The notes below the pieces were generated by a model, which saw nothing but the letters and a program-made list of their open reading frames with translations, searched no databases and was not told the DNA's origin. Both the position numbers and the translations under genes were made by a program. A stretch of 64,000 bases of DNA from Eukaryota sp. TZLM1-RC. Its lineage: Eukaryota; Protista; Metamonada: BaSk clade. The stretch lies in contig JAUPSS010000001.1 in assembly GCA_040285825.1 (NCBI GenBank), positions 3,410,001 to 3,474,000 on the forward strand, written 5' to 3'. Below, piece by piece: positions 1,903-36,286 of the stretch; position 1 is the stretch's first letter, and each line of letters starts with the position of its first letter.

Positions 1903-2927
1903 TTAGACTGTTCTTGTTGTCTAGCTTACATTTCAAAACTTCCAAATCCTAATGGACAAATTCCACTGCAATATTAAATCCATCTTGTTGTTTGAATAGT
2001 AGTTGGTTTAAGTCGATAATTGAAATGTATCTTCACTGCTACAGCAAGCGTCAATTGGCTTATAAATAATGTCAGAATTGTTCATGTTGTCACATCATGG
2101 TGACGTTGCATATGCTTCCATTTGTCACCCTTTTTTCAGTTGATAAGCATCTTGCTTGCTGATGGTGAACTAGTAAAGAAAAATTAATCAAATGGTGACG
2201 TTGTTTTTGAGCTATGGATTATGTCTTCAGGTCATAATTCACAGACTCCCATGAAATTCGGTTTAATTGTTTGTCTTTTGTTAAAGATCAAATTCCTTGA
2301 TTCTTTGAGTGCCTAAATGGGTAGTTTGATTGACTATTATTTTGATTCTTCTTTAGATCTACAACTGTTTGAACTAAGCAAAAGCAGATCTTATGTTCTC
2401 ATTCATAGATTGAAGTACAAAAGTCGAACAAAGCACCCATTAACACAATGTATTAACTGAACTTTACTTGCAGTGTTAATTGAAACATTGTCAAATGTTC
2501 AATGGAAATTAAGCAAGTCTGCGGAGAAGTTTTGTGCATAAATTAGGAATTTTTTTGTCTTTTTTGTCATTTAAATTTCGATTGGATAGTTTAAATCTCA
2601 GAACTTTGTGGAAGCAGACTTGTTGTTTTTGTCAGCAATTTGCTATTTAGTCACATGATGAAGAACATCTGTGGAAAGCACTGTCTTGTTTGTGCATAAT
2701 ATATTGATTTCGAAAGTTGATGCAGTGCAAAGTCAGTAATTGTTGGAGGAAGACTTATTGTTTATCATTTTAGTTTAATAATACAGAATATTGAGAATAG
2801 TTCTGAATTACACGTACCTAAATAACTTTAACTTTATCAATTTAATATTTAAATTAGCAACAAAACCCCAGACATAATGAAAAAATATTATACAAATCTC
2901 AACAACCATTAAACAATAAATCAAATT

Positions 2928-3462
2928 CTACTCTGGCCTGGTGGCAAAATCATCAATTACTCCAGCATTGATCAACACTCTTTCCAATTGAGGGGTGCTA
3001 AAGTCATCATTGTTTCCCAACCTCTCAAAGCCCACCATTCTGTCCTTCGCCACTCCATCAAAGAAGAAAACGGTACAAGGGAGAACCTTGATGTTCAGCT
3101 TGGTCACAAAGAATGGAGCTTTGGAGGCTTCAATCTTGATGAATTTTGCTTCAATGTGCTGCTGAGCAAGAACATCTAGATGATAGTCTAGGATCTCACA
3201 ACGTTTAAACTCAGGGTGGTAGAAGTGAACAACAACCCGAGTGGAAGAAGTGACTTCCTTGAGAAATTGACCCTCGTCTATTTCTCGAAGGCTACCATGA
3301 CCTGAAGAGAGCATGTTTTGGATGCGTCTATGTCTTGAGTAAGAAGATAAAAGCAGAAGCGTACTGGTTTTTCATTTCAGCCATGCGGCGTTCACGGATG
3401 ACAGAGAGTTCCTCGTCGTCAGAGAAGTCGGATAAGTCAGAGTAATCACGGTCAGAATCCAT
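2928..3462 (-). CDS. TXNDC9: Phosducin-like protein 3 / thioredoxin domain-containing protein 9 (2 exons)
   Basis: GHGSLREI...VVVHFYH..F.RC.I.D.HL..LA..H.E.KF.KI...KAPF.V.KL.IKVLP...GFE.LG motifs. Removing a 31-nt intron (3334-3364) joins the upstream exon MDSDRDYSDLSDFSDDEELSVIRERRMAEMKNQ in frame. Confidence 0.9.
3334..3364 (-). other. 31-nt spliceosomal intron
   Basis: GTACGC...TTACTCAAG; removal restores the frame of the phosducin-like gene. Confidence 0.85.
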
Positions 3463-3659
3463 TCTCAAAGATAATGTCTAGAAAATGAGTGAGTTGAATT
3501 GTTTTAATAAATTTGATTTATTCTAAAAGATACAGTCTAAAAATCAATATCTTCAAGATTTGTATTGAGTTGAAATTGATGGTCCACTTTTTCATCAACT
3601 GACAATTCAAAATTTCTGAAAATATGACGAAAAATGTCTTCCTTTCGAACGAAAGTTCA

Positions 3660-4314
3660 TTTATTCCAACGAGAAACTAAACAGCAAAATTAAAATTGTA
3701 AATCTTCATATCACAAATCAGCCAAAAACAATTGACTGGAAGTTTTTCCTTCATAAAAGCGACAAAGAGATAATAAAGCAGAAGATAATAAGGGAACAAC
3801 AGCCTTAACAGTTGAAAATACAATTCTGTTCTGCCAAAATATTTTGTCAAAAAATCTTCCTGTATGGAGTTTTACAATTTCAACAAAATCATCCAAGAGA
3901 GATAAAGCAGGTGGTCCAAGCATACCATGTACGGAAAAAACAAATGGACAAAGGTCATAATGAGTGTGAGTTTCAGCATTCAATGAAACCAACTTTGCTG
4001 TATATTTATCAATTCTAGAATTTTCGGCAACAGACAACGGACTCTTGTGTTTTGATTGAGCTAATGATATAAACGAATTACACACATCAGTTGATCTCAC
4101 ATCAGTAATGATAGTCGTCCTTTCAAGACCTTCCAGCATTAAATCAATTCTATTTCGACCAAAAGAATTCAAAGTATCTTCATCAACCAAACGAAAGAGT
4201 AAAGGTTTTAAAAAGTAAACAATTCTGTGTGACTTTGTCATACAATAGTGTTGATCCCCAACTGCATCATGGATTTTTGATCGGAAAGTAATAGAGAGTT
4301 TACAATTAAACAGG
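3660..4314 (-). mobile_element. 3' fragment of CRE-type LINE, family H (RLE domain)
   Basis: HDAV.DQ, R.DL..D..D, PFVFSVHG, FWQNRIVF motifs in ORF 3711-4358; C-terminus LFLADL. The first residues of that ORF come from the adjacent family A tail. Confidence 0.8.
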
Positions 4315-7300
4315 TTTTTTTGTATTAACAATTTTATTAAAAACTTGTAAATCAACATTTAAGTAATCCATCTCTCCCAAAACAAAAACACTAGATGCAA
4401 CTCTCTTATAGTGAGATCCAAGAGAAACAAAGCATCAGAAACCATCTTCAACATCCCCTTAAAAATAGAAAACACGATTCTATTTTGCCAAAACAATCTG
4501 TTGAAATTTCTGTTAGTTGTTCTCTTTACAATAATTTCAAAATCTGCCAAAAAACGCATAGCCGTTGGAGCAAGTGAACCAAAAAGAGAAAATACAAATG
4601 AATACAAATTTTATTTTGCATGCTTGCTGTTGACTGGACATTTTGGACAAAGGTTCATTGTATTTTTTGATTTTGAAATTTTCAGCATTTGAAAGAGGAT
4701 TATGAATTTCAGAATTAGCAAGCCTCTCATTTGAAGCATTACAAGGATCAACAGACATTACATCCAATAAAATGAAGGTTTTATCTAATCCAGGTAATAT
4801 GGCATTACGTATATTATTCTTATGAAAATCATCGTCAGTATCAAACAAATTTGACAACAGAGGTTCCAAAAAGGATTCAATTTTATGAGACTTACACATA
4901 CAATATAATTGGTCTCTTACAGCATCATGAACCTTGCTTCTAAAAATAATAAAATGTTTACAATTTAACAAATGAGTAATTGTAATTTTTCGAGAACATT
5001 TATAAATTAAATTATGAGGTAAATTATTAGTCCAGATACAGGAACGAAATCTCTTATTCAAAGTCCAAGCAGAATCAGTTAGGAGAGTTTCATAAACTTG
5101 AGGAATTGTTGTTACTAAGGCAGAAGAAGTACTGTCACATATATCTTGTAAAAGATTTGCAAAAGCGGGATTCTTTTTCTTGACCAAGCCAAGTCTAGCA
5201 TCAAAATCCAAGCTTTCAAAAATCTTTGACAATTTTTGTTGAAGCTTTTTACAGCAAAACTGTAAATTAAAAAGAGATCGGTTTGGAATTTCTTGAATTG
5301 ATTGGGGAAAACATTTGGTCCAAATTTGTGGCGGCAATTTTTCAAGTTCACAAGATAACTCATACAAATAAGGACTGCAATTGGGAACTAACAGATGAGA
5401 ATCATCAGGAAATCTACGAGAAAATTCATAAATAAAATTCTTGCATCCACCCAAAAATGCTGATTGACACAAAATGGAAGATTTAGTAAATCCAATACCA
5501 CCCAAATTTGCTGAAGAAAATAAGTGATTTTTCAACATTCCAGGTTCTACATCCAATAAATCAGCAGAAATTCGGTTGTCAATGAATTAAAGGAACGACA
5601 AAAATCAAATGCTATGGAAGGAGCACAAGATCTCAAAAAGTGGGTTATTTTCCCAATAAAACAAATTTTATGCATGAAAAATTTAATATGTTTTTCTAAA
5701 TCTAAAGAAGAAATTGAATCAAGTCCAATTTTCATTTTCTCCAAAATAACTTGGAATTCATTCTGAATTTGAGGCACATTTCCAAACCAACAACCAAGGA
5801 ACTGGAAGGCATCACTACTATAATTAGTAACACGGACACCAAATCATATTTAGAAAATCAGATTTAATTACTTCAAAAATTGCTATTCGCTTTACAAAAT
5901 TAAAAGCACTTTTAGAGTCAAGATTAAAAATAAAGTTATTTTCCTCTGCATTAAAAAAAGTATCAGAGGCAAGAGCAGCAACATAAGCACCATCAATTGT
6001 TTTTATTCCAAATTGGTGAGGATTCAATAAGAAGTTTTGTCTTTGACACGATCAAAGACAAGTGATGCCAGCAAACGAGATAGAGATTCACCAACAGCAA
6101 TTGGGCGTATTCCATCATGTTTAATTCCATTACCAGGCTTTACTAAAGCAATCAAACGTGCAGCCAGTAATTCATATGGGGGATTAATTTTCAAAACAAT
6201 TAATTGTTGAATATAATGGGCAAGATCTGCAGCAATTTCAGGAGCTTTGGAGCACGCTGTTTTTAACAGATCAAAAGAAATTCCAGATGGGCCTGCAGTT
6301 TTTCCTTTAGGTAGTTTTTGAATAGCTTTGGAAACTTCAATTACAGAAATTGGATTTTCAATCCAAAAAGGACAAACATCAGGCTTGCTACACTTAAATC
6401 TTTTTTGAGGATGTAACTTTTGAAGTGTTTCAAGAGTTTTAGAATTTGTATCAGCCAAAGAAGAGGAAAACAAAAACTGTTTTGCTGCTCCATAACGACG
6501 ACGTAAGCAAAACTTTCGGATAACTTTTGATTTCCCAACTTTTCTTATTCCAAATTTTTTTTAAAACATTTTTTGCTTTTTTCTAGCAAAATATTTCCAG
6601 AAGAATGAAATATTCCACTTATTTTTTTTAATTTAGAAGTGAAAGTTCGCAGTTCCATTGAAAAGGGAATTGTATTGGCGGGGCTAATTTCTACTGGAAT
6701 CTGAATCGGAGGTCTAACAGTATCAGCAGCTTTACAATTGGTGCAAAACAAAAGTTTTCGATCATTATTTGAATCTTTAACATCTTTTCTGCAAAATGGA
6801 CAACAAAGATTATTGTTTTCAGAAGGGGAAGGAGAGTGAACCCCAGAAGCATTTGAATGAAGATCGTGAGAAACATTATTTTCAGCACAATTCAAATCGA
6901 CATCAACTAGACCGGAACTTTGATCAGAACTTTTTGCATTATGATAACTTGCTTGAACTTCTGCATTAGAGGGCTCATGAAAACAACTGTTGAGCACATG
7001 GTTAGCTGATTTTGATTTTAAAGCATTTTTCTTATTTTCTTTGCAAGTCCTGGAATTATAAACACTAATTCCACAAATTGAACATTTTGGTCTCGATTAA
7101 TTTTTTTAGAAATTAATTGTTTTGATTGATTGCATGTTTCATCAGAAATTGAAGAATGTTGTCGAATAGGAGAATGAAATGCAACAGTACTGGCTTCATA
7201 ATTGTTTTCGACATAGAGGATGTTTGCTGTTGTAAAAGGAGTTTGAATCGCACAAGAGAATGAATACTACGACGTGGAGTAGCTAAACTTGGTTTTGTGC

Positions 7301-7330
7301 AATACGTTGATTTCTCCAAATTTTCTAAAA
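4315..7330 (-). pseudogene. Near full-length degenerate CRE-type LINE, family A
   Basis: Decayed N-terminal knuckle (CSICGISVYNSRTC, ~7040-7090), CPFC, GK.AGPSG, RPIAVGESL, LD.K.AFN, C-terminal CCHC/RLE. Many frameshifts and a deletion of the QGDP/YMDD region. Confidence 0.9.
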
Positions 7331-9201
7331 AATTTGAAGAAAATTTTTTAGGTAAAAATGAAGAAGGAAAAGGAATGTGTAGTTAAACAGATGATTTGGA
7401 GAAATTTTTGATCAACATTTGCAAATCAAATTATGAGGCAAGTTATCGGGTCAAGTGAAACATCGAAGGTGAATTGTACTAAAAAATTGTGATATCATTA
7501 AAGGACGTAAAATGTCAGATGGAAAGAATGATGATTGTTTTAGTTCTGTTTTCTCATTTTTCGAAAAGAGCACCATTTGCCACATTTTGTGTTATGCTGC
7601 TAAAATTACAAGAATTGTACATAGGGTTCTGGTTTTGGCTTATAGTTTAAGAACAAGGTCCCTCACAAGAATAATACCATTTGGCCATTAAATATTTTCG
7701 TCCCTATGTTCCATTCATGCCCTGTCATCAACCAAATGTCCCCCAAATAGTTCTTTTTTTAGTTCACAACAATAAGCCTTTGAACAGGTGTCACATTTTC
7801 GAAAAAGCAAAATCAATGAAGGAATCAATGGAACCAGTACAAAACGTGTTATTGAGTGTTATTGGTACAATTTCAATTGGCTTGCAGTATATGGTTGAAA
7901 TTGAATTCTTTCTCCTGATTTTTTCTTCAGGAACAGAGAGAATTTTGATAATAAAATTATGTTGTTCCCAAAACATCATTCACTATAATATTCTTGATTT
8001 AAAACAGATTTCAACTTGTGATGTGAACAGTATATTTTGTGCTGAGAGAACACTCGCTTAAAATCAAGATAATCCTTATTGAACATATTGTCTTCTTGAC
8101 ACAACATTCACACTGTTGCTGTTCGTTGACATTTATAAATGTTGAACATTTATTAGTGCCACGGCAATCACAAACAAATGTGTAAAAATATGTTGTGTGG
8201 ATTTGTTTAACAAAAAGTTTTGCTCGGAACTGCCAAACACATTATTATAGCTGATACATTTAACAAATTTTGTTAAATATAAGATTTTTATATTTACAAA
8301 AATGAAACCAAATAGACAATTTGAACAAAATAAATTACAGATGACTCAAGAAGGAAGATAGTTTTGTTTTGTGAGTTCACATCACGATGGACCAATTTTT
8401 GGATAGTAGACATACATTACAAAATACGAAATATCAGAGTCTTGAATTGTTATTGTCAAACTTAGATTTTTTGGTTGTTTTAGCAAGAACATTAGTTGTT
8501 AGTAGCTGTATTTCATTGCTAAAAAGATTACATATTCCAAAGTCTACAAAGAAAACAATATGTACAGAATTGTTATTTCAAGCTCACGAATGCTCGTACC
8601 GTGGCTTCAAAGTGTTGCAAGCTCAGTATTTCACATTCATTATTAATAGGAAAGATTGTTTTTTTTTGTTTTAATAAGACGTACTATCTGAAAAAAACCC
8701 TGCCACAGTTCAATGTTACATAAATCGTTTATGTAATAGAAAATAAATTAATAATAAATAGATAATAGAGCGAAAAAGATCCACCGGAAGGGCCTCTCTG
8801 ATGTTGATCTACTCTGATGTATAAGAATTGCCCTAATCACCATCTAATTGTAGTGTTTATTGTGTAGAGGACAAGTTTAATGCTTTAGTTAAGAGTGATT
8901 TAGTTTAACGAAAGCAACCAACAACGTATCACTTATTTACTTTTTATTTTAATCAATTTTAATAAATTTTATATTTAAATAGAATTCAATGTTCTGCTGA
9001 TGATTGTTTGCTTTTGGATTTCATGTCATCAACCGCCAATTTTATTAATTTCAAAAGATCTTAGTGAAATTTTCTGTTAAATCTGTTTTTTCAATGGTGA
9101 ATTTTTCATTTTTAAAGCACAAGTTTTCTCTTACTTAGTTTTTTATTTTATAATATTTATCTTTATTTATTTATTTTTAAAATCTTTATCAACACCAAAT
9201 C

Positions 9202-20299: not shown

Positions 20300-21340
20300 T
20301 TTTTTTGGTTAATTTGTTTTATTTTGAAACGCAAACAAAACAACTAAACAAAAAACTAGAACTCAATATCCTCAATACACGCATCAACATCATCAAACTT
20401 CTTCAATGCGCGATTCTCATACTCTATTCCCAATTGCAACAGTGCTTTGGTTATCATTTCGGGAATTGCTTCAAGAATACTGAAAACAATAAAAGAATTC
20501 TCTATTATTATTTATTATTATTCTTATTATGCCAAAAATTGAAGTTCCATTTTTTTCCCCGCTCTTTCAAATAAACCACCTGATACTTGACATGCTCAAC
20601 ACGTCCTAGCTGAGATATGGGTTCATTGTACTTTTTGATTTTGCTCTTTTCAGCAAAGCAGAGCGGAGTTTCATCCTCATTGGCAAAATCAATTGCTGAA
20701 TCCTTACAAACATCAACAGTGACAACATCAACAACTGTTCTCACACCATCAGACCCTGGTGTAATTAAATCAGCACGGCGTTTCCCAAAAGTATTTTCAT
20801 CTTCATTTTCAGGTGACAACTTTCGCACAAGAAGTTCAACAAAAGCTTCAATGTGATGACTTTTGCACATTTCATACAGTTGGTCTCTAACAACATCGTG
20901 AAAAACTGAGCGACATGTAATATTAAATTCACAATTGAATAAATGATTCAGATTGATGAGCTGACCACAACGACAAATCAAATCATTTGGCACACTGCAT
21001 GACCACAAAAACACCTCATCCTTAGGGCAGTTGTCCATTGATAATCATTCAACAATAAACCATAGACATTTGGAATCTGGGAAATGAGACAACTTGAGCT
21101 ACTTTCCTTATTGATTAATTAAAAAGTTTGCAAAAACGGGATTCTTTTCTTTAGCCAAGCTAAGACGAACAGTGAAATCCAAGTTTTCAAAAACTTTTAA
21201 TATCTTTTTCTGCAATTTAGCATATGCAAATTTCAAGGAAATCAAACTCCTGGGTGGAATTTCTTGCATATCAGCAGGAAAGCTTTTGGACCATATGTGA
21301 GGAGAGATGCATTCAATTTCACTCTGCAAGGACACTAAAT
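20300..21340 (-). pseudogene. Degenerate 3' portion of CRE-type LINE, family F
   Basis: Homologous to 37311-37946 (HD.VRDQ, KRRADL, DVVTVDV, IEDIEF). Confidence 0.85.
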
Positions 21341-22279
21341 AGTCCTTAATCTGAATTCAAGGGGATAGGTTTCACTCACAGCAGCATGGACGTCTTCAGA
21401 CTTATCATCGTATCACACTACATAAATATGAAATTGGCCAAAATCAAGCTCTGCAAAAAAGTCATGTGGACTAACATTGCAAGTATCGTTAATGCAGTTT
21501 CAATTTGAGTTTATGGAGTTCAATTTTTGGAAGTGAGAACATCTTGTATGGAAAGAAAATGAGTAGAAAAAGTGTGAAGAGTTTGAAGTAGAGAGATAAG
21601 GTTATGATAAGTTTTTAGATGTCTAGTTTTAAGACAAGAAGGACAGCTGAAGGGGTGACGCCAGCAGAAGTTGTTGGAGCAGCTTGGGATGGACGATCTC
21701 CAATAGACTCGAGTTTAGACTCAAGAATAGCCAGTAGTGCCTCTGTAGACTGTTTTTTGATAGTCTATTTTATTGGATCCAATATTTTATAGTCAATGTG
21801 TGAGCGCACTGAATGAAACCTATAACCCCTTTAAAAGAAAAGCCAACAGTTCCACAAAGATTTATGGCGGTCTCAGATATAGTTGAACGAGGAGCAAAAG
21901 GTTTTTCGTCACAGAGGAAAAAAATGGGAAGGAAGAAACAAGTGTTGTGACTTCCCTTGGTTACATGTTTGAACTGAATAAAGGAATTAAAATGTGAAAC
22001 TTTACGAATTTTTTGAATCTACAAACACCCTTGAATAAACGAACAACTGCTTTGACTAACAACAATTTCATCAAATTTCACATCTGTTAACTATTTTTAG
22101 GAAACAAAATGCTTAAAGCAGGTCCACTATCCATTATAAAAGTGTCTATATATCAGTTTGTGCATGTTTTATTGTTTTGTGGATGTAAGGAGTTGAAAAT
22201 AACCCAAATCTCAAAAGTAACTGAAACTGAGATATCAATCATTACTGATTGTCTGCACCTTCCGTTTTCAGTAAGGTCT

Positions 22280-24088
22280 ATGCAGTCCACGACACGTGCC
22301 TGCTGCCTTCAAAAGGTTCTTTGAGCGGCCAGTGTGTGATTATATTGATGGACAGCTGACCAAGGTGACCACCATGGCTCACCTCGGCAGTTTGCTATCC
22401 AGAGTTTTTGCTATGCGCTTCCCTGAAAACAGTCATTTCCTGACCCAGCATCAATTCTCGATCCAGTGTCTTGACTTTGTGGCGGCCTCTGAGCCAGATG
22501 TCAGACATCCATTTAACAGACCTGGCAAAGGCCATGTGTATGAGAAGCTCCAGCGAATCTCTACATCATGGCCGTTTGCTGTCTTGTTGTTGTCAAAAAC
22601 ATGTCGTGTTCATGCACAACTCACCAGTGGGCCTCTACAACAACTAGTGGATGCAAAGTGCCGCCAGCTGCAAGGCAACTACCAGCAGCTTCTTGCTGAT
22701 GTACCTTTGTCGTGGAAGCTTAACTTCTTTCGCTCGAATGCAGTAGGTCATAACTGCCCTGCACCAGCCACTTATGCTGGCTTTGTTCTTCACAGCAGCA
22801 CGAACTTTCGTGAACCCCTTCCTTCTTGGTTCAACACACACCATACCATGGCTCTCACTCTGTTTAATTTCTTTTTTGGTGATCCTTAAAGGTACAACAT
22901 TCTTCTTTCTTCCCGAAGAGTGACTCCTAATCAAGAGAACAGTACCTACATCTTTCGTTGCGGCTTAACAATCCAAAACCACCTGGAGCAAGCCTTTGCA
23001 CATACTTTTAGACGACATAGACTCACCCCATCGTGTGTTTGAAGCCTGCTTTTGTCCCCTTTTACACATGGGTTCTCAACTACTTTATCTCCAAAAACAC
23101 ATCACAAACAATTTTGAAAAACCCTTATTTATTGTTTAGAACAAAAGCTAATGAATACACCATATCTTCTAATGGTGATAGTGTCCGTATAACTTTCAAA
23201 CCCCATCCAAAAGCAGCACGAGTGAGATTGTCCGGAGAAGCCTTGGCTGATAAGAGATCCAGAACCACTCGGAATAGAAAACATACCTTGCAAGCCAAGA
23301 TTGAACGGCCAAGACCTCGCCAGAAACCAAAAGCTACTGAGTGGCAGGCACCTGATGACGAAACGGAAATGGTGTTCTGGGTCATCGACCCCAACCACTC
23401 AAATCTATGTGGTTCCAGCATTGCAACACGTTCAGGGCCGACCGTATACAATATCTTCTTGGCACCAAAGCAACAAAAAATCAATCACTCCGCTTCACTG
23501 ACCCACTCATCAATAGATGTTTATGACGTGCAGAAATCGAACCATTATCTGCTTGAAATATCAACTATCGGTGACTATAAGGATTATGAAGGTAATAACG
23601 TAGGACGATCATTGCTAAAACAGCAATTATATCTGAGTGCTCGAAAAGCATTGATGAGAAACACATTTGACTTCTTTATAAGAAAACAAAAAATATTCAG
23701 CTCAATTATCAACAAAGTGAAAAAATTTGCCAACGGTCGAGAAGTAAAGGTGTGGTTTGGCAATGGAGGTGGTGGTACATCACGTCAAAAAGTGAAAACA
23801 GCACGCAAGGCGTTTCTCAAGTTGTTACAATGTTCATTTGCTAAGGTGAAGATCGCAGATGAATATATGACATCTGCAAAGGTGAACTGCTGCAAGATGC
23901 TACACCAAAAGATCTATCGAAAAGTTGACGGTGAAGTTAAAGTTCACAACGCCTATTTCAGTTGTCCGGAATGTAATCAAGTTTGGTCTAGAGACATTTC
24001 TGCATCCCTAAATCAGCTAGAAATTGCAATTAGTGAGCACTACTATAGAACAAGACCAGAAGCGTTGCAGAGACCACAAAGAAACTAG
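22280..24088 (+). pseudogene. Fanzor1 RNA-guided endonuclease, family 1 (~600 aa reconstructed; RuvC half intact, N-terminal half broken by a stop at 22887 and frameshifts)
   Basis: ORF 23033-24088 has WED-like ISSNGDSVRITF, RuvC-I VIDPN, VWFGNG, rearranged RuvC-II ADEYMTS, Zn-finger NCC...CPEC, RuvC-III WSRDISASLN and terminal RPEALQR. ORF 22296-22889 plausibly supplies the N-terminus. Confidence 0.9.
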
Positions 24089-24245
24089 CTTCAAAGCTAC
24101 GTATTGTTCTAGAGGAGAAATGGGCTCACTGAGATTGGTGGACAATTATTCAAGGATTCTAGAACGTCTGTGGTCGATCTCACCAAGAATGTAAGTTCTT
24201 GGATTAAGTTTGAATGATGCTTGACGAAAATATGCATTTCTGTTG
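24089..24245 (+). ncRNA. Putative Fanzor omega RNA (scaffold ~24089-24224 plus candidate guide)
   Basis: About 94% identical (8 mismatches in ~136 nt) to 35058-35193. Stems TGAGATTG/CGATCTCA and CCAAGAA/TTCTTGG, plus a pseudoknot-like ATTATTCAA/TTGAATGAT pairing. Position matches known Fanzor/TnpB omega RNAs. Confidence 0.7.
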
Positions 24246-24272
24246 AAAACCAACAGAAAGAAATTAATTTGA

Positions 24273-25724
24273 ATGCCTGCCACAAACGAGCTCACCTTTG
24301 CTCTCATCAGAGAGTTTTTGTCTCGTAACAGTTACACCGAAACCTTGTCCACTTTTCAAGATGAAGCAGCTACTTCTTCCAAAATAACACGGTCTCAACT
24401 CATCAAAAATCTTGGTCTTACTAAGTTATACGTAAAGAATAAACAGAAACCTCAACCTCTCCCCTCTCTCCTTCAGTGTCTTGTGGAAAATCTTGCCGAG
24501 AAGCATTCTGAGGTTACACCTGACTCCACCTCTCATCCAGTTGAAGTTTTAGGTGATGAGAGGATACGTCGTTTAAGCAAACCCCGACCTCCGTCAGCCG
24601 GTTTTCGTAATCAAAGTTCCAGGCAGAAGAAGAAAGTTAAAGCCAAATGCGAAGACGTTGTTGTTGAAGACCTTAGTTCTGTTCTAACTGTAACTCCATC
24701 AAATATCCAATCAAATATCCAATCAACACAACCCATCAACAATCATTTTGATACCCCTTTCGCATTGTCACTTTCTCTTACTGAAATTGATGGACTTACC
24801 AATGCTATCTTTGGCTCTCGTCCTGCATTTCTTTCTGAGTCTTGGTTCCAGGGTATTAAAAGGGTAAAAGATTTTGATCCAAATTTTAGTACAAATTACA
24901 GCAATCTTTCTGATTATTTATTGTATCAGGATGAAGGTGGTCCATGTGGAGTAATTTCTATTTTTCAAGGTTTCATTATTAATTTGATTAATACCAAAGA
25001 TTGTTCTTTGAATGTTTTTCCCACAGTATTTGCTGGTATTATTTACAATTGTGCTGTTAAAAAAGATGAATTAATTTTAATTTCAGTCAAATCAGAGCCC
25101 GATCCCCAACTTCGCAGGGTACTTCAAGGTTCTAAGAAACTGGTTTTCTCTTCAATTAGTGAGATGACTCAACATTTACAATCGCATTGGGAAACATTTG
25201 CCACCTACGCAGGGTATCTTTCCCTTCTCCTCTCTTGCGTTATCTCTCATGGATGCGAGGCAGTGATTGAAGAAGGGGGGCCAGGGAGAACTTCGTTGAT
25301 TACCAAATATGGATACTGTGCTCAAGAGATGATAAACCTCATGCTCACTGGAGTTGCATCAGGGCAGGTCTTTGACAACGTCAGAGATGTAGGTGGTGAG
25401 GAAATGAGAGGTGTGGAAACATGTCCCATTCTGGGGTTCCTTACTGTTTTCGAATACCACAACTATGTGGAAGTTGGTTCTTTTTACAAAAACCCTCAAA
25501 GTCCTATCTGGGTAATAATGGCAGAGAATCACTACTCGGTCTTTTGGAAGCATGGTGGAGATTATCTCTATTGGGACCCTCTTGGTCGTTTGAGCAATGT
25601 TGTCACTTGTCATGTTGACAAGTTAGTTGATCCCTTCTTTGACCCTCATGATGTTCCCCCCATTGAGTTAGCATTGAGGACGTTGTTTAAAGAACATTCG
25701 TTCACTTGGGATGGCTTGATGTAG
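24273..25724 (+). CDS. MINDY4: MINDY-family deubiquitinase, MINDY4/FAM188B-like
   Basis: N-terminal L.REFLSR motif, catalytic Q..GGPCG, GYCAQE..NL.LTG.A, P..PIWV....HYSV. Confidence 0.85.
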   Translation: MPATNELTFALIREFLSRNSYTETLSTFQDEAATSSKITRSQLIKNLGLTKLYVKNKQKPQPLPSLLQCLVENLAEKHSEVTPDSTSHPVEVLGDERIRRLSKPRPPSAGFRNQSSRQKKKVKAKCEDVVVEDLSSVLTVTPSNIQSNIQSTQPINNHFDTPFALSLSLTEIDGLTNAIFGSRPAFLSESWFQGIKRVKDFDPNFSTNYSNLSDYLLYQDEGGPCGVISIFQGFIINLINTKDCSLNVFPTVFAGIIYNCAVKKDELILISVKSEPDPQLRRVLQGSKKLVFSSISEMTQHLQSHWETFATYAGYLSLLLSCVISHGCEAVIEEGGPGRTSLITKYGYCAQEMINLMLTGVASGQVFDNVRDVGGEEMRGVETCPILGFLTVFEYHNYVEVGSFYKNPQSPIWVIMAENHYSVFWKHGGDYLYWDPLGRLSNVVTCHVDKLVDPFFDPHDVPPIELALRTLFKEHSFTWDGLM

Positions 25725-33452: not shown

Positions 33453-35036
33453 CACATATAAAGGAACGAAATCTCATATTCAGAGTCCAAGCAGAATCGG
33501 ATAAGAGAGTACCATAAACTTGTGGAATTGTTGTTACTAAGGCAGAAGAAGTACTGTCACACATATCTTGTAAAAGATTTGCAAAAGCGGGATTCTTTTT
33601 CTTGGCCAAGCCAAGTCTAACATCAAAAACCAAGCTTTCAAAAATCTTTGACAATTTTTGTTGAAGCTTTTTACAGCAAAACTGCAAATTAAACAGAGAT
33701 CGGTTTGGAATTTCTTGAATTGATTGAGGAAAACATTTGGTCCAAATTTGTGGCGGTAATTTTTCAAGTTCACAAGATAACTCATACAAATAGGGACTAC
33801 AATTGGGGACTAACAGATGAGAATCATCAGGAAATCTACGAGAAAATTCATAAATAAAATTTTTGCCACCACCCAAGAATGCTGATTGACACAAAATTGA
33901 AGATTTAGTAAAACCAATACCACCCAAATTTGCTGAAGAAAATAAATGGCTTTTCAACATTCCTGGTTCTACATCCAATAAATCAGCAAAAAATTCTGTT
34001 CTCAATGAATTCAATGAACGACAAAAATCTAATGCTATGGAAGGAGCACAAGATCTCAAAATGTGGGTTATTCTCCCAGTGTAGCAAATTTTAAGCATGA
34101 AAAATTTAATATGCTTTTCTATATCTAAAGAAGAAATTGAATCAAGTTCAATTTTCATTTTTTCAAAATAACTTGCAATTCATTCTGAATTTGAGGCACA
34201 TTTCCTAACCAACAACCAAGGAACTTAAAAGCATCACTACTATAATTAGTAAAAGGGACAATAGAATCGTTTATCACAAGATCTTGAGCAGAAGAGCCAA
34301 TCAGAAGGCATTTGCTCGCATTAAGATATAGCCCAATATTTTCATATGAATCGGCAATTTCTTGAGCAACCAATTCTAGTAAATCAAATGAACCAATCAA
34401 GGATGTATCATACATATAAGCAACTATTTTTATAGAAGGGTATTTTTGCTTAATGATATTTAAAGTTTTGTGAATAGCTAAACAAAACAATAACGGGCCT
34501 AAAGGTTCACCTTGCTTCACACCAGAAGATGATTTAAGACCAAATGAATTAAAAATTAAATCTGATTCTTTCCCATAAAAATGGTAGAAAAAACTTGATA
34601 GCTCAGGAAAATCAGATTTAATAACTTCAAAAATTGCTTCTCACTTTACAGAATTAAAAGCATTTTTAAAGTCGAGATTAAAAATAAAATTATTTTCCTC
34701 TGCATTAAAAAAGGTATCAGAGGCAATAGCAGCAACAGAAGCACCATCAATTTTTTTGATTCCAAATTGATGAGGATTCAAAAATGTAGAGGCTTTGTCT
34801 TCGACGCGATCGAAGACAATTGATGCCAGCAAACAAGAAAGAGATTCACCAACAGCAATTGGGCGTATTCCATCAGGTTTGATTCCGTTTCCAGGCTTTA
34901 CTAAAGCAATCAGACGTGCAGCAAGTAATTCAAATGGAGGATTTATTTTCAAAACAATTAATTGTTGAAAATAGTGGGCTAGATCATCAGCAATTTCGGG
35001 AGCACTGGAACACGCTATTTTTAAGAGATCAAAATT
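33453..35036 (-). mobile_element. Family A LINE internal segment (RT)
   Basis: ORFs 33442-34158, 34155-34520 and 34641-35039; degenerate catalytic motif AYMYD. Confidence 0.9.
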
Positions 35037-36286
35037 CACTTGAAATGTCTACTTTCTTCAAGCATTATTCAAACTTATTCCAAGAACTTTCATTCTTGGT
35101 GAGATCGTCCACAGACGTTCTAGAATCCTCGAATAATTGGCCACCAATCTCAGTGAGCCCATTTCTCCTATAGAACAATATGTAGCTTTGAAGCTAGTTT
35201 CTTTGTGGTCTCTGAAACGCTTCTGGTCTTGTTCCATAGTAGCGCTCACTAATTACAATTTCTAGTTGATTAAGTGATGCAGAAATGTCTCTAGACCAAA
35301 CTTGATTACATTCCGGACAACTGAAATAGGCGTTGTGAACTTTAACTTCACCATCAACTTCTCGATAGATCTTTTGGTGTAGCATCTTGCAGCAGTTCAT
35401 CTTTGCAGATGTCGTATATTCATCTCTGATCTTCACATTAGCAAATGAACGTTGTAACCACTTGAGAAACGCCTTGCGTGGAGTTTTCACTTTTTGACGT
35501 GATGGACCACCACCTCCATTGCCAAACCACACCTTTACTTCTCGACCGTTTGCAAATTTTTTCACTTTGTTGATAATTGAGCTGAATCTTTTCTTTTTTT
35601 TAAAATTTAATTTTATTCTAAACCTATAAATCAACATCTAAAAAATCCATCTCTCCCAAAACAAAAACACTAGATGCAACTCTCTCATAGTGAGATCCAA
35701 GAGAAAGCAAAGCATCAGAAACCATCTTCAACATCCCCTTAAAAATAGAAAACACTATTCTATTTTGCCAAAACAATCTGTTGAAATTTCTGCCAGTTCT
35801 TCTCTTCACAATCATTTCAAAATCATCCAAAAAACGTAAAGCAGTTGGTGCAAGTGAACCAAAAAGGGAAAATACAAATGGATACAAATTGTATTTTGCA
35901 TGCTGTAGACTGGCCAATTTGGACAAAGGTTCATTGTATTTTTTGAATTTAAAATTTTCAGCATTTGAAAGGGGATTATGAATTTCAGAATTAACAAGCC
36001 TTTCATTTGAGGCATTACAAGGATCAACAGACATTACATCCAATAAAATAAAGCTTCCATAAAGCTGAATCTTTTCTGTTTTCTTATAAAGAAGTCAAAT
36101 GTGTTTTTCCTCAATGCTTTTCAAGCACTCAGATATAATTGCTGTTTTAGCAATGATCGTCTTACGTTATTACCTTCATAGTCCTTATAGTCACCGATAG
36201 TTGATATTTCAAGCAGATAATGGTTCAGTTTCTGCACGTCATAAACATCTATTGATGAGTGGGTCAGTGGAGTGGAGTGATTGATT
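35037..36286 (-). pseudogene. 5'-truncated Fanzor family-1 copy with omega-RNA region, interrupted by a LINE
   Basis: 35194-35594 and 36063-36286 match 23480-24088; 35037-35193 matches 24089-24247. Confidence 0.93.
35595..36062 (-). mobile_element. 5'-truncated family A LINE inserted into Fanzor, with 15-bp TSD
   Basis: AGCTGAATCTTTTCT at 35580-35594 and 36063-36077; A-tail at the 3' end. Confidence 0.92.

Follow-up and report, generated by a model that had tools for sequence, protein, structure and literature searches.

A region at about 21.6-24.26 kb of the 64,000-nucleotide (nt) stretch of Skoliomonas litria TZLM1-RC DNA analyzed here (the window; contig JAUPSS010000001.1, positions 3,410,001 to 3,474,000) is very probably one dead copy of a multi-copy, non-autonomous Fanzor1 element. 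Fanzor1 nucleases are eukaryotic RNA-guided relatives of TnpB and Cas12. The source organism, labelled 'Eukaryota sp. TZLM1-RC' in GenBank, is a free-living anaerobic soda-lake metamonad (PMC11603281, PMC11316075), and the gene has been entered there as hypothetical protein P9112_014418 (P0072; 525 amino acids (aa), window 22374-24088). The protein family and its fold, the defects of this copy (copy 1), a conserved right-end module that folds stably in relatives, and target duplications are established by the data. We conclude that copy 1 is a decayed remnant of an element of known kind, belonging to a branch that is new and very divergent, and that the enzyme of this branch is probably RNA-guided.

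The C-terminal part of the gene forms an open reading frame (ORF). A preliminary description of this DNA had assigned to it the motifs VIDPN, ADEYMTS and WSRDISAS and a zinc finger, and indeed all were found in place. VIDPN covers aa 117-121 (nt 23381-23395) with the catalytic D119 at 23387-23389, ADEYMTS covers aa 275-281 (nt 23855-23875) with the alternative glutamate E277 at 23861-23863, and WSRDISAS covers aa 318-325 (nt 23984-24007) with D321 at 23993-23995. The zinc-finger residues are NCCKMLH (nt 23885-23905) and CPEC (nt 23963-23974). At the canonical glutamate site a glycine is found, within VWFGNGG (23750-23770), and the DEYMTS glutamate directly precedes the zinc finger. The TNB zinc-finger domain is located between RuvC-II and RuvC-III, as in Fanzor1. 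A rearranged position of the RuvC glutamate has been published for Fanzors (PMC10530073) and was called 'Ealt' (PMC10711439). The DEYMTS glutamate together with the VWFGNGG glycine therefore fits the published rearranged Fanzor site. The glutamate and the last aspartate of the RuvC triad are invariant in 16 relatives, and the WED motif, SNG in the window, reads TDG, TNG or SDG in relatives.

The sole Pfam match of the ORF was PF07282 (Cas12f1-like_TNB; E 2.5e-5), at 24.8 bits and thus below the cut-off of 26.3. The same family was matched by all 16 relatives tested at E<=0.01, with P0004 (28.1 bits) and P0009 (30.7 bits) above the cut-off. A search of NCBIfam gave no match, and phmmer of the ORF against PDB sequences returned nothing relevant. 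Exhaustive phmmer with the ORF revealed 61 matches. Full-length relatives (539-604 aa) pair with the ORF at their residues ~250-590, and the named relatives are all hypothetical proteins from three Skoliomonas isolates. A profile including distant matches recovered the solved Fanzor1 proteins over their full length (SpuFz1 2.6e-72, PpFz 4e-53, GtFz 1e-52).

Structure prediction led to the same family. The AlphaFold model of the window ORF has a predicted local distance difference test score (pLDDT) of 74.5, with a RuvC/TNB core above 90 and a poorly predicted stretch of about 100 residues at its start. Foldseek with this model returned SpuFz as best match (E 4.6e-8), followed by Cas12f, PpFz and TnpB. 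The model of the relative P0068 (pLDDT 83.9) again matched SpuFz best (E 8e-14, template modeling (TM) score 0.56-0.57), and its top seven matches were SpuFz, PpFz and GtFz over the full length (TM 0.44-0.57). Fanzor2 and TnpB reached only TM ~0.2, and Cas12f was likewise far below the Fanzor1 structures. Judged by profile and modeled fold, the protein is a Fanzor1. The preliminary description, which had named comparison with hidden Markov models and structures as the way to check its proposal, was thus right about a Fanzor1-type protein with a rearranged RuvC-II glutamate: motifs, profile and a fold matched over the full length of SpuFz, PpFz and GtFz all agree. Its size of ~600 aa holds when counted across the defects of copy 1, and an AT-rich protist was also the correct source.

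The same description had presented a compact nuclease locus with an intact RuvC triad. The gene as a whole is not intact, however: the open frame is confined to the C-terminal 351 aa, and the broken N-terminal half had gone unnoticed. Using tblastn with full-length relatives, residues ~8-247 were found in frame 0 at 22287/22296-23030 (aa 8-247 of P0068) and residues 247-588 in frame 2, from 23027. Since both halves are matched, the whole protein of ~600 aa is represented in copy 1, but broken. Compared with the closest paralog, locus L001, the start ATG is replaced by ACG (~22289-22291), extra bases are present at 22287 (C) and 22315 (G), and a TAA stands at 22887-22889 where L001 has CAA. Paralog contigs also lack the base at 22315. 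A ciliate-type code, in which TAA would be read as glutamine, was rejected, because L001 reads CAA at that codon under the standard code. The T that is missing at the frameshift site is present in L001 and in paralog contigs from public DNA runs. In runs X1 and X2 a part of the read depth lacks this T, like the window, and an assembly error is therefore unlikely. Because of the lost ATG, the frameshifts and the TAA, copy 1 is, as read from its sequence, unable to make the full protein.

The GenBank model describes a different gene, one that starts at the internal ATG 22374 and regains its frame by two tiny introns, one of 30 nt spanning the TAA and one of ~113 nt spanning the frameshift. In favor of this model, GT..AG borders are present in both cases, tiny introns occur in this host, and RNA-seq was used to train the published gene models (PMC11316075). 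Nevertheless, we consider a functional gene of this structure improbable. The removed FNFFFGDP*R aligns with coding FNHLVGDVVL of P0068, and the removed IVCLKPAFVPF...LLFR aligns with coding residues of P0068, P0004 and P0011. Paralogs read CAA at the window TAA and carry the missing T, and the model loses ~28 N-terminal and ~48 internal conserved residues. The same patching is seen in P0068 (L005), in which the 29 nt annotated as an 'intron' code for VSLRIIFPQ, the conserved strand that follows the (T/S)DG motif. On these alignments, the 'introns' of P9112_014418 are false and mask the defects. A truncated RuvC/TNB protein with remaining function, expressed from the C-terminal ORF alone, is conceivable in so far as 351 codons retain all three catalytic residues, the zinc ligands and the well-predicted core. 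This seems extremely improbable to us, since the ORF has a GTG start and no promoter or initiator motif of its own, its first ~100 residues are poorly predicted, and the REC half and most of the WED half are missing. In solved Fanzor1 structures REC and WED hold the RNA and the heteroduplex. Ratios of nonsynonymous to synonymous substitution rates (dN/dS) of 0.5-0.7 and stops in sister copies point to decay, and a young pseudogene may plausibly retain an open stretch of 351 codons.

In Skoliomonas Fanzor genes, this locus included, tiny annotated 'introns' of 22-113 nt (GT..AG, in most cases with a length not divisible by three) resemble gene-finder patches that cover frameshifts and stops, with further sites at L005 4895-4923, L004 4696-4717 and L008 3838-3865. 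Owing to such patched models, the protein sets of Skoliomonas genomes overstate the number of intact Fanzors.

A second copy in the window (copy 2) consists of two pieces, separated by a 5'-truncated piece of a long interspersed nuclear element (LINE; Table 1). Because a 14-15 bp target duplication flanks the latter, this junction is an ordinary LINE insertion and not a template jump. Copy 1 and copy 2 show 8 mismatches in the first 136 nt after the stop codon, in agreement with the identity of ~94% reported before. However, identity between copies is 89-91% over 159 nt of the tail versus 93-95% in the coding part. The tail is no better conserved than the coding sequence, and the 94% consequently shows a recent duplicate only, rather than selection acting on an RNA. 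Comparisons among copy 1, copy 2 and L001 gave dN/dS of 0.49-0.70, and L001 contains stops in addition to a 1.8-kb hAT insertion. By these measures all three examined copies of the subfamily are broken and evolve almost neutrally. The insertion that splits L001 (5007-6823) is of hAT type, with a BED-like finger, an RNase-H-like fold and a hAT dimerization domain. In run X3, labelled as a different organism (organism B), we observed DNA contigs 95-97% identical to pieces of window 23292-23917; either the subfamily is common to several isolates or species, or cultures were mixed.

Uninterrupted ORFs are found in the sister isolate TZLM3-RCL, namely P0004, P0078 and P0081 (592 aa; L006, L011 and L012) and P0005 (604 aa; L007). 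Seven full-length 592-aa copies, located on different contigs, fall into one 90% cluster. The reconstruction of an intact gene from copies, which had been suggested, is unnecessary given these uninterrupted relatives.

Downstream of the stop codon lies a non-coding tail. In the tails of relatives from three genomes, AYGTATTG is found ~10-20 nt after the stop and is followed by a hairpin of subfamily-specific sequence. The tails terminate in the consensus TAT(G/T)CA(T/C)-N8-9-GAAA(A/T)-N-C(A/T)CAG, which ends at 24256 in the window. This terminal block is invariant in 8 tails from 3 genomes, and a search of both strands of 157 kb found the full motif at Fanzor tails and nowhere else. Right-end breakpoints lie, in window coordinates, at 24249 (L001), 24247 (copy 2) and 24252 (a paralog contig), and the comparisons of L002 with L004 and of L006 with L012 likewise diverge immediately 3' of CAG. 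Compared with dinucleotide shuffles, the tails of relatives reached folding z scores of -4.53 (L002), -3.88 (L012), -3.79 (L006), -2.93 (L005), -1.76 (L007) and -1.18 (L009). Their layout comprises a 5' hairpin (P1), a closing helix (P2) and an inner stem (P3). In P2, CUGUG directly after P1 pairs with the terminal CACAG; this helix is kept in nine sequences, with one compensatory change from U-A to A-U. In P3, the UAUGCAU block and the following pyrimidines provide the 3' strand, and the partners covary between subfamilies (CCC:GGG, UUUUUU:AAAAAA, UUCC:GGAA). The published Fanzor1 guide-RNA (reRNA) scaffold has three stems and no pseudoknot, its last bases lie in a stem, and the transposon end is inside the scaffold (PMC10711439). 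The agreement of the three-stem tails with such scaffolds is suggestive, albeit not decisive. We regard the family-level 3' module as a good candidate for an omega RNA, as predicted from comparison and folding.

This layout differs from the one proposed earlier. The three stems of the preliminary description lie at the coordinates it quoted and are able to pair, and they gain no support from folding energy or from comparison with relatives. The CCAAGAAT hairpin does exist, but it is confined to this subfamily and broken in L001. The stems 24130-24137/24175-24182 and 24145-24153/24210-24218 cross P1, a hairpin common to the copy-1 tail and its relatives at this position, by pairing its loop with downstream bases, and the 'surviving' pseudoknot was based on two single-sided wobble changes, none of them compensatory. 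What remains of the proposed 3' omega RNA is therefore a conserved non-coding module, whose layout is not that of the proposed stems and which is degenerate in copy 1. With a covariance model (R1) built for the terminal domain, the nine tails used in training were the only ones recovered, with no new tail in the window or the loci; the model missed copy 2, a solo tail in L007 and an L010-type variant. Rfam returned only a chance 7SK match for 21500-25000 (E 0.66).

Several results weigh against our interpretation of the locus as a member of an RNA-guided Fanzor1 family. With a profile built from Skoliomonas proteins only, no solved Fanzor or TnpB was found in the PDB at E<=0.01, and only LaTranC appeared, at 0.028. 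Fanzor membership at the level of sequence is transitive, running through unnamed metagenomic proteins, and the family is very divergent. This gap is bridged by the structure comparison. The folding energy of the copy-1 tail is no better than chance (z -0.20 for 24089-24250 and -0.48 for 24107-24256; copy 2 -1.13). Tested against shuffles, the terminal helix did not reach significance in any individual sequence (p 0.05-0.7), and RNAalifold recovers only 5 pairs at -0.8 kcal/mol. Furthermore, several relatives annotated as intact are themselves patched with false introns, and the public sequencing runs that carry the locus are DNA contigs only.

By analogy with relatives and with published Fanzor1 work, RNA expression, guide use and cleavage would be expected of the Skoliomonas Fanzor1. 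A live copy would hold a single gene for ~590-650 aa (WED-REC-RuvC-TNB, with catalytic D, alternative E and D), with transcription from a short leader of the initiator type. Downstream of the stop codon, the 75-170 nt up to the fixed right end would fold into the three-stem scaffold, in which P1 forms the 5' hairpin, the conserved UAUGCAU block contributes the 3' strand of the inner stem P3, and the terminal five bases, CACAG, make up the 3' strand of the closing helix P2. The guide would come from the flank by read-through, and the protein-RNA complex would cut matching DNA. In the window, the respective flank overlaps the 5' leader and the ATG (24273) of the host MINDY-3/4 gene.

We also compared the ends of the elements. 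No terminal inverted repeats (TIRs) and no transposase were found in the element comparisons, as the preliminary description had stated for this locus. Elements at L001, L004, L007 and L012 are flanked by target duplications. For the window element, 21559 is a weak candidate for the left end, next to AAAGAAA at 21552-21558 that is repeated at 24257-24263; this sequence is of low complexity. The 5' ends vary within a subfamily, with L006 extending further 5' than L012, and the L001 element starts only ~75 nt before its ATG. Sequence of 0.6-1.5 kb upstream of the ATG is also copied with the element. A cut-and-paste (DDE) transposon would have TIRs and duplications of fixed length; TIRs are absent here, and duplications measure 7, 8, 8-10 and 13 bp. 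Elements that combine one fixed end, the 3' end, with ragged 5' ends and duplications of unequal length are thus unlike the products of a DDE transposase. They correspond to the published one-ended Fanzor1 pattern, with a fixed 3' end, 5' truncation and duplications of variable length (PMC3627910). A hAT enzyme as partner transposase was rejected, since the L001 hAT gene lies inside the 1.8-kb insertion that splits this paralog. Likewise, 22253-22284 (CTG...GTTTTCA...ATGCA), approximately the reverse complement of the right-end block, was rejected as a TIR, because the leader is shared with subfamilies that do not have that block and paralog homology extends further upstream.

Two further arrangements were observed. 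A solo tail of Fanzor type, consisting of a hairpin and ...TATGCTTCCGAGTTGGAATCCACAG, was found at ~2310-2375 in the left flank of L007; it has no adjacent ORF and sits 9 nt before the 13-bp duplication of the P0005 element. At L001, one element is located directly behind the tail of another, and new copies seem to land just behind old right ends.

Candidate routes of copying are rolling-circle replication, reverse transcription by the enzyme of a LINE, or repair that stays incomplete once the nuclease has cut. Tentatively, and as a possibility rather than a probability, we propose that the Skoliomonas Fanzor1 is not moved by a DNA transposase but copied in a one-ended manner from its 3' end. 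In the most novel version, a retrocopy, a LINE enzyme would reverse-transcribe the Fanzor transcript, with template jumps onto LINE RNAs. In favor of a retrocopy, the L004 unit carries the precise 3' end of a LINE (L004 2687-2810) within its 8-bp duplication, and the LINE inserted in copy 2 produced a duplication of 14-15 bp. Against it, no A-tail or LINE-like tail is present at the Fanzor element ends, and the 0.6-1.5 kb upstream of the ATG are copied as well. With regard to insertion after TTTT-like tetranucleotides, as in Helitron2-associated elements, left flanks end in TTTG, GTTA, TCTC, ATAC and ATGG and are T-rich in only 1-2 of 5 cases.

The folded tail itself could serve a purpose other than, or in addition to, that of a guide-RNA scaffold. 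It might be the end signal of copying, either as a Helitron2-like hairpin end in one-ended rolling-circle transposition or as a 3' handle for a reverse transcriptase, or it might serve as an outward promoter through which the host gene downstream stays active. The fixed 3' end with variable 5' ends (L006 versus L012, the ~75 nt of L001 and the solo tail of L007), the varying duplications (8 bp in L004, 13 in L007, 8-10 in L012 and 7 in L001) and the lack of TIRs speak for such an end signal, and Chlamydomonas Fanzor1 elements CRe-1/2/3 with the same pattern have been tied to Helitron2 (PMC3627910). In 6 of 10 loci the right end precedes the ATG of a host gene on the same strand by 1-45 nt, which also favors these roles. 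On the contrary, the right-end region of characterized TnpB and Fanzor systems is scaffold, which in Fanzor1 includes the transposon end (PMC10711439). No LINE copy of the LINE-rich window carries the Fanzor terminal block, and no Rep/Hel gene was found in the ~160 kb examined. We therefore judge an end signal or promoter in place of, or beside, the scaffold to be rather unlikely. As the Fanzor1 transposon end is part of the scaffold, the end-signal and guide-RNA roles are not exclusive.

The six right ends that lie close to a host start codon are at 24256 in the window (ATG 24273), 4884 in L012 (ATG 4886), 5884 in L006 (ATG 5890), ~5069 in L010 (ATG 5084), 5907 in L004 (ATG 5936) and 4887 in L007 (ATG 4933). 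The host genes behind these ends are MINDY-3/4, RtcB, PDCD2_C, VPS51, CAF1A and an SF3b1-like ORF, and in L012 the host ATG lies within the target duplication. This arrangement suggests targeting of, or survival at, the 5' ends of genes. The tail may also act as a source of promoter activity or read-through for the host gene.

Upstream of the Fanzor1 gene, the alignment of paralog DNA contigs begins at 21662, and similarity to 21633-21661 persists in the clipped ends of these contigs. Pfam gave no match for small ORFs of this 5' region. Variants of the leader motif occur 10-40 nt before the ATG in L002, L004, L009 and L010. A motif TCAATCATTTCTGAYTGTYTG of the leader is common to several S. 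litria Fanzor subfamilies and holds a TCATT initiator-like core that had been noted before at host genes. A non-coding 5' module of 354 nt is 90% identical between L007 (2511-2864) and L012 (2581-2935), and is also present in L006 and L011. The proteins of the subfamilies sharing this module are only ~36% identical. The module has either been exchanged recently or is an element in its own right that became attached to the two subfamilies. In the neighborhood, a LINE 3' fragment (window 20508-21335, minus strand) lies in opposite orientation just 5' of the Fanzor unit. This fragment and the numerous LINE copies that begin at 28 kb mark the region as a debris dump of mobile elements beside intact host genes. 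All features are summarized in Table 1.

Table 1. Positions of Fanzor1 element features in the window and of target duplications at related loci (locus coordinates where a locus is named).
Feature	Position	Strand	Remarks
5' region of the repeated unit	21662-22234	+	shared with paralogous contigs; without recognizable coding content
Initiator-like leader motif TCAATCATTACTGATTGTCTG	22235-22255	+	close variants upstream of ATG in relatives
Broken N-terminal (WED/REC) half of the Fanzor1 gene	22287-23030	+	frame 0; from tblastn and L001 alignment
Frameshift site	23026-23029 (approximate)	+	one T missing after C run, frame 0 to frame 2
Open C-terminal ORF	23033-24088	+	351 aa, GTG start; end of WED, RuvC-I/II/III, TNB zinc finger
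3' non-coding tail, candidate omega-RNA/reRNA scaffold	24089-24256	+	degenerate in copy 1
Tail element ACGTATTG	24099-24106	+	
Tail P1 hairpin	~24105-24167	+	
Tail CTGTGG	24168-24173	+	
Tail CCAAGAAT/GTTCTTGG hairpin	24183-24202	+	
Terminal block ATATGCATTTCTGTTGAAAACCAACAG, right end of element	24230-24256	+	copies diverge right after CAG or <=4 nt later
Flank that would supply the guide on tail read-through	24257-24276	+	by analogy with TnpB/Fanzor biology
Copy 2, 3' piece	35035-35599	-	corresponds to copy 1 23683-24247; without the last ~9 nt of the terminal block; its 35035 end adjoins a 5'-truncated LINE
5'-truncated LINE piece inserted in copy 2	35600-36062	-	14-15 bp target duplication (A)GAAAAGATTCAGCT
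Copy 2, 5' piece	36063-36286	-	corresponds to copy 1 23479-23702; truncated on the 5' side; missed by the preliminary description
Target duplication AAAGAAA, 7 bp, weak candidate	window element ~21559 to 24256		left end a candidate
Target duplication AACTTTTC, 8 bp	L004 element 2516-5907		
Target duplication TACTTATTTGACT, 13 bp	L007 element 2398-4887		
Target duplication AATGCCTA(AA), 8-10 bp	L012 element 2273-4884		
Target duplication TACAAAT, 7 bp	L001 element ~3976-7830		

Among known systems, the solved Fanzor1 proteins are closest. SpuFz1 of Spizellomyces punctatus (PDB 8GKH, 9CEU-9CEZ) is the best full-length structural match, with the same domain order. Together with PpFz and GtFz it shares with the Skoliomonas proteins the IDPN aspartate, the glycine at the canonical glutamate site, the DE(Y/F)xTS glutamate, the RD aspartate and the (T/S)(D/N)G motif in WED, and all are encoded by single-gene non-autonomous elements of ~2-3 kb. 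Identity, however, is only ~14-20%, and the host of the Skoliomonas elements is a metamonad, unlike those of the three. SPu-1 has 33-bp TIRs and TA duplications (PMC3627910), whereas the Skoliomonas elements have no TIRs and duplications of 7-13 bp. After Fanzor1, Cas12f and TnpB rank next in the fold search. TnpB (IS200/IS605, IS607) and Fanzor2 share the RuvC and TNB core and a guide-RNA gene at the 3' end of the element, but they are proteins of ~400 aa that do not have the long helical REC of Fanzor1, most TnpBs keep the canonical glutamate, and pseudoknot scaffolds and a TnpA partner set these systems apart.

In terms of end structure, CRe-1/2/3 of Chlamydomonas reinhardtii and MCi-2 of Mucor are the nearest counterparts, as these Fanzor1 elements are likewise non-autonomous, keep their 3' ends intact and are often truncated on the 5' side (PMC3627910). 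Their duplications are variable too, 7-19 bp compared with 7-13 bp in Skoliomonas, and in both groups foreign sequence is found on the 5' side and insertions lie directly behind older copies (PMC3627910). The CRe pattern was published in 2013 by Bao and Jurka and attributed to one-ended Helitron2 transposition (PMC3627910). The 5' ~200 bp and the short 3' ends of CRe elements are common to confirmed Helitron2 (PMC3627910), whereas no Helitron partner was seen for Skoliomonas. CRe duplications follow T-rich tetranucleotides (PMC3627910), in contrast to most of the Skoliomonas left flanks, and the LINE 3' end inside the L004 duplication is a further difference. For the RNA, the reRNA of insect-virus Fanzor1 (Yoon et al. 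2023, PMC10711439) is most similar, with three stems, no pseudoknot, paired last bases, the transposon end in the scaffold and a guide from the flank, as proposed for Skoliomonas. Those reRNAs were seen by small-RNA sequencing in TIR-bearing elements (PMC10711439), while the Skoliomonas RNA is a predicted one.

Copy 1 itself adds little, being a pseudogene annotated in GenBank as a spliced gene. The family it belongs to has wider meaning. A literature search revealed no paper pairing 'Fanzor' with 'metamonad', and, as far as the searched literature goes, the Skoliomonas family extends the range of Fanzor1 to metamonads. It is compact (~590-650 aa, with a tail of 75-170 nt), and the uninterrupted copies of the sister isolate are possible editors to test. 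The end structure and the landing before host start codons bear on two questions, by what route Fanzor-only elements spread and how the nuclease serves them. If the tentative retrocopy proposal were true, the gene for an RNA-guided nuclease would spread in one retrocopy with the scaffold of its guide RNA, landing preferentially just upstream of host start codons, and the one-ended process could explain the unexplained Chlamydomonas pattern of 2013.

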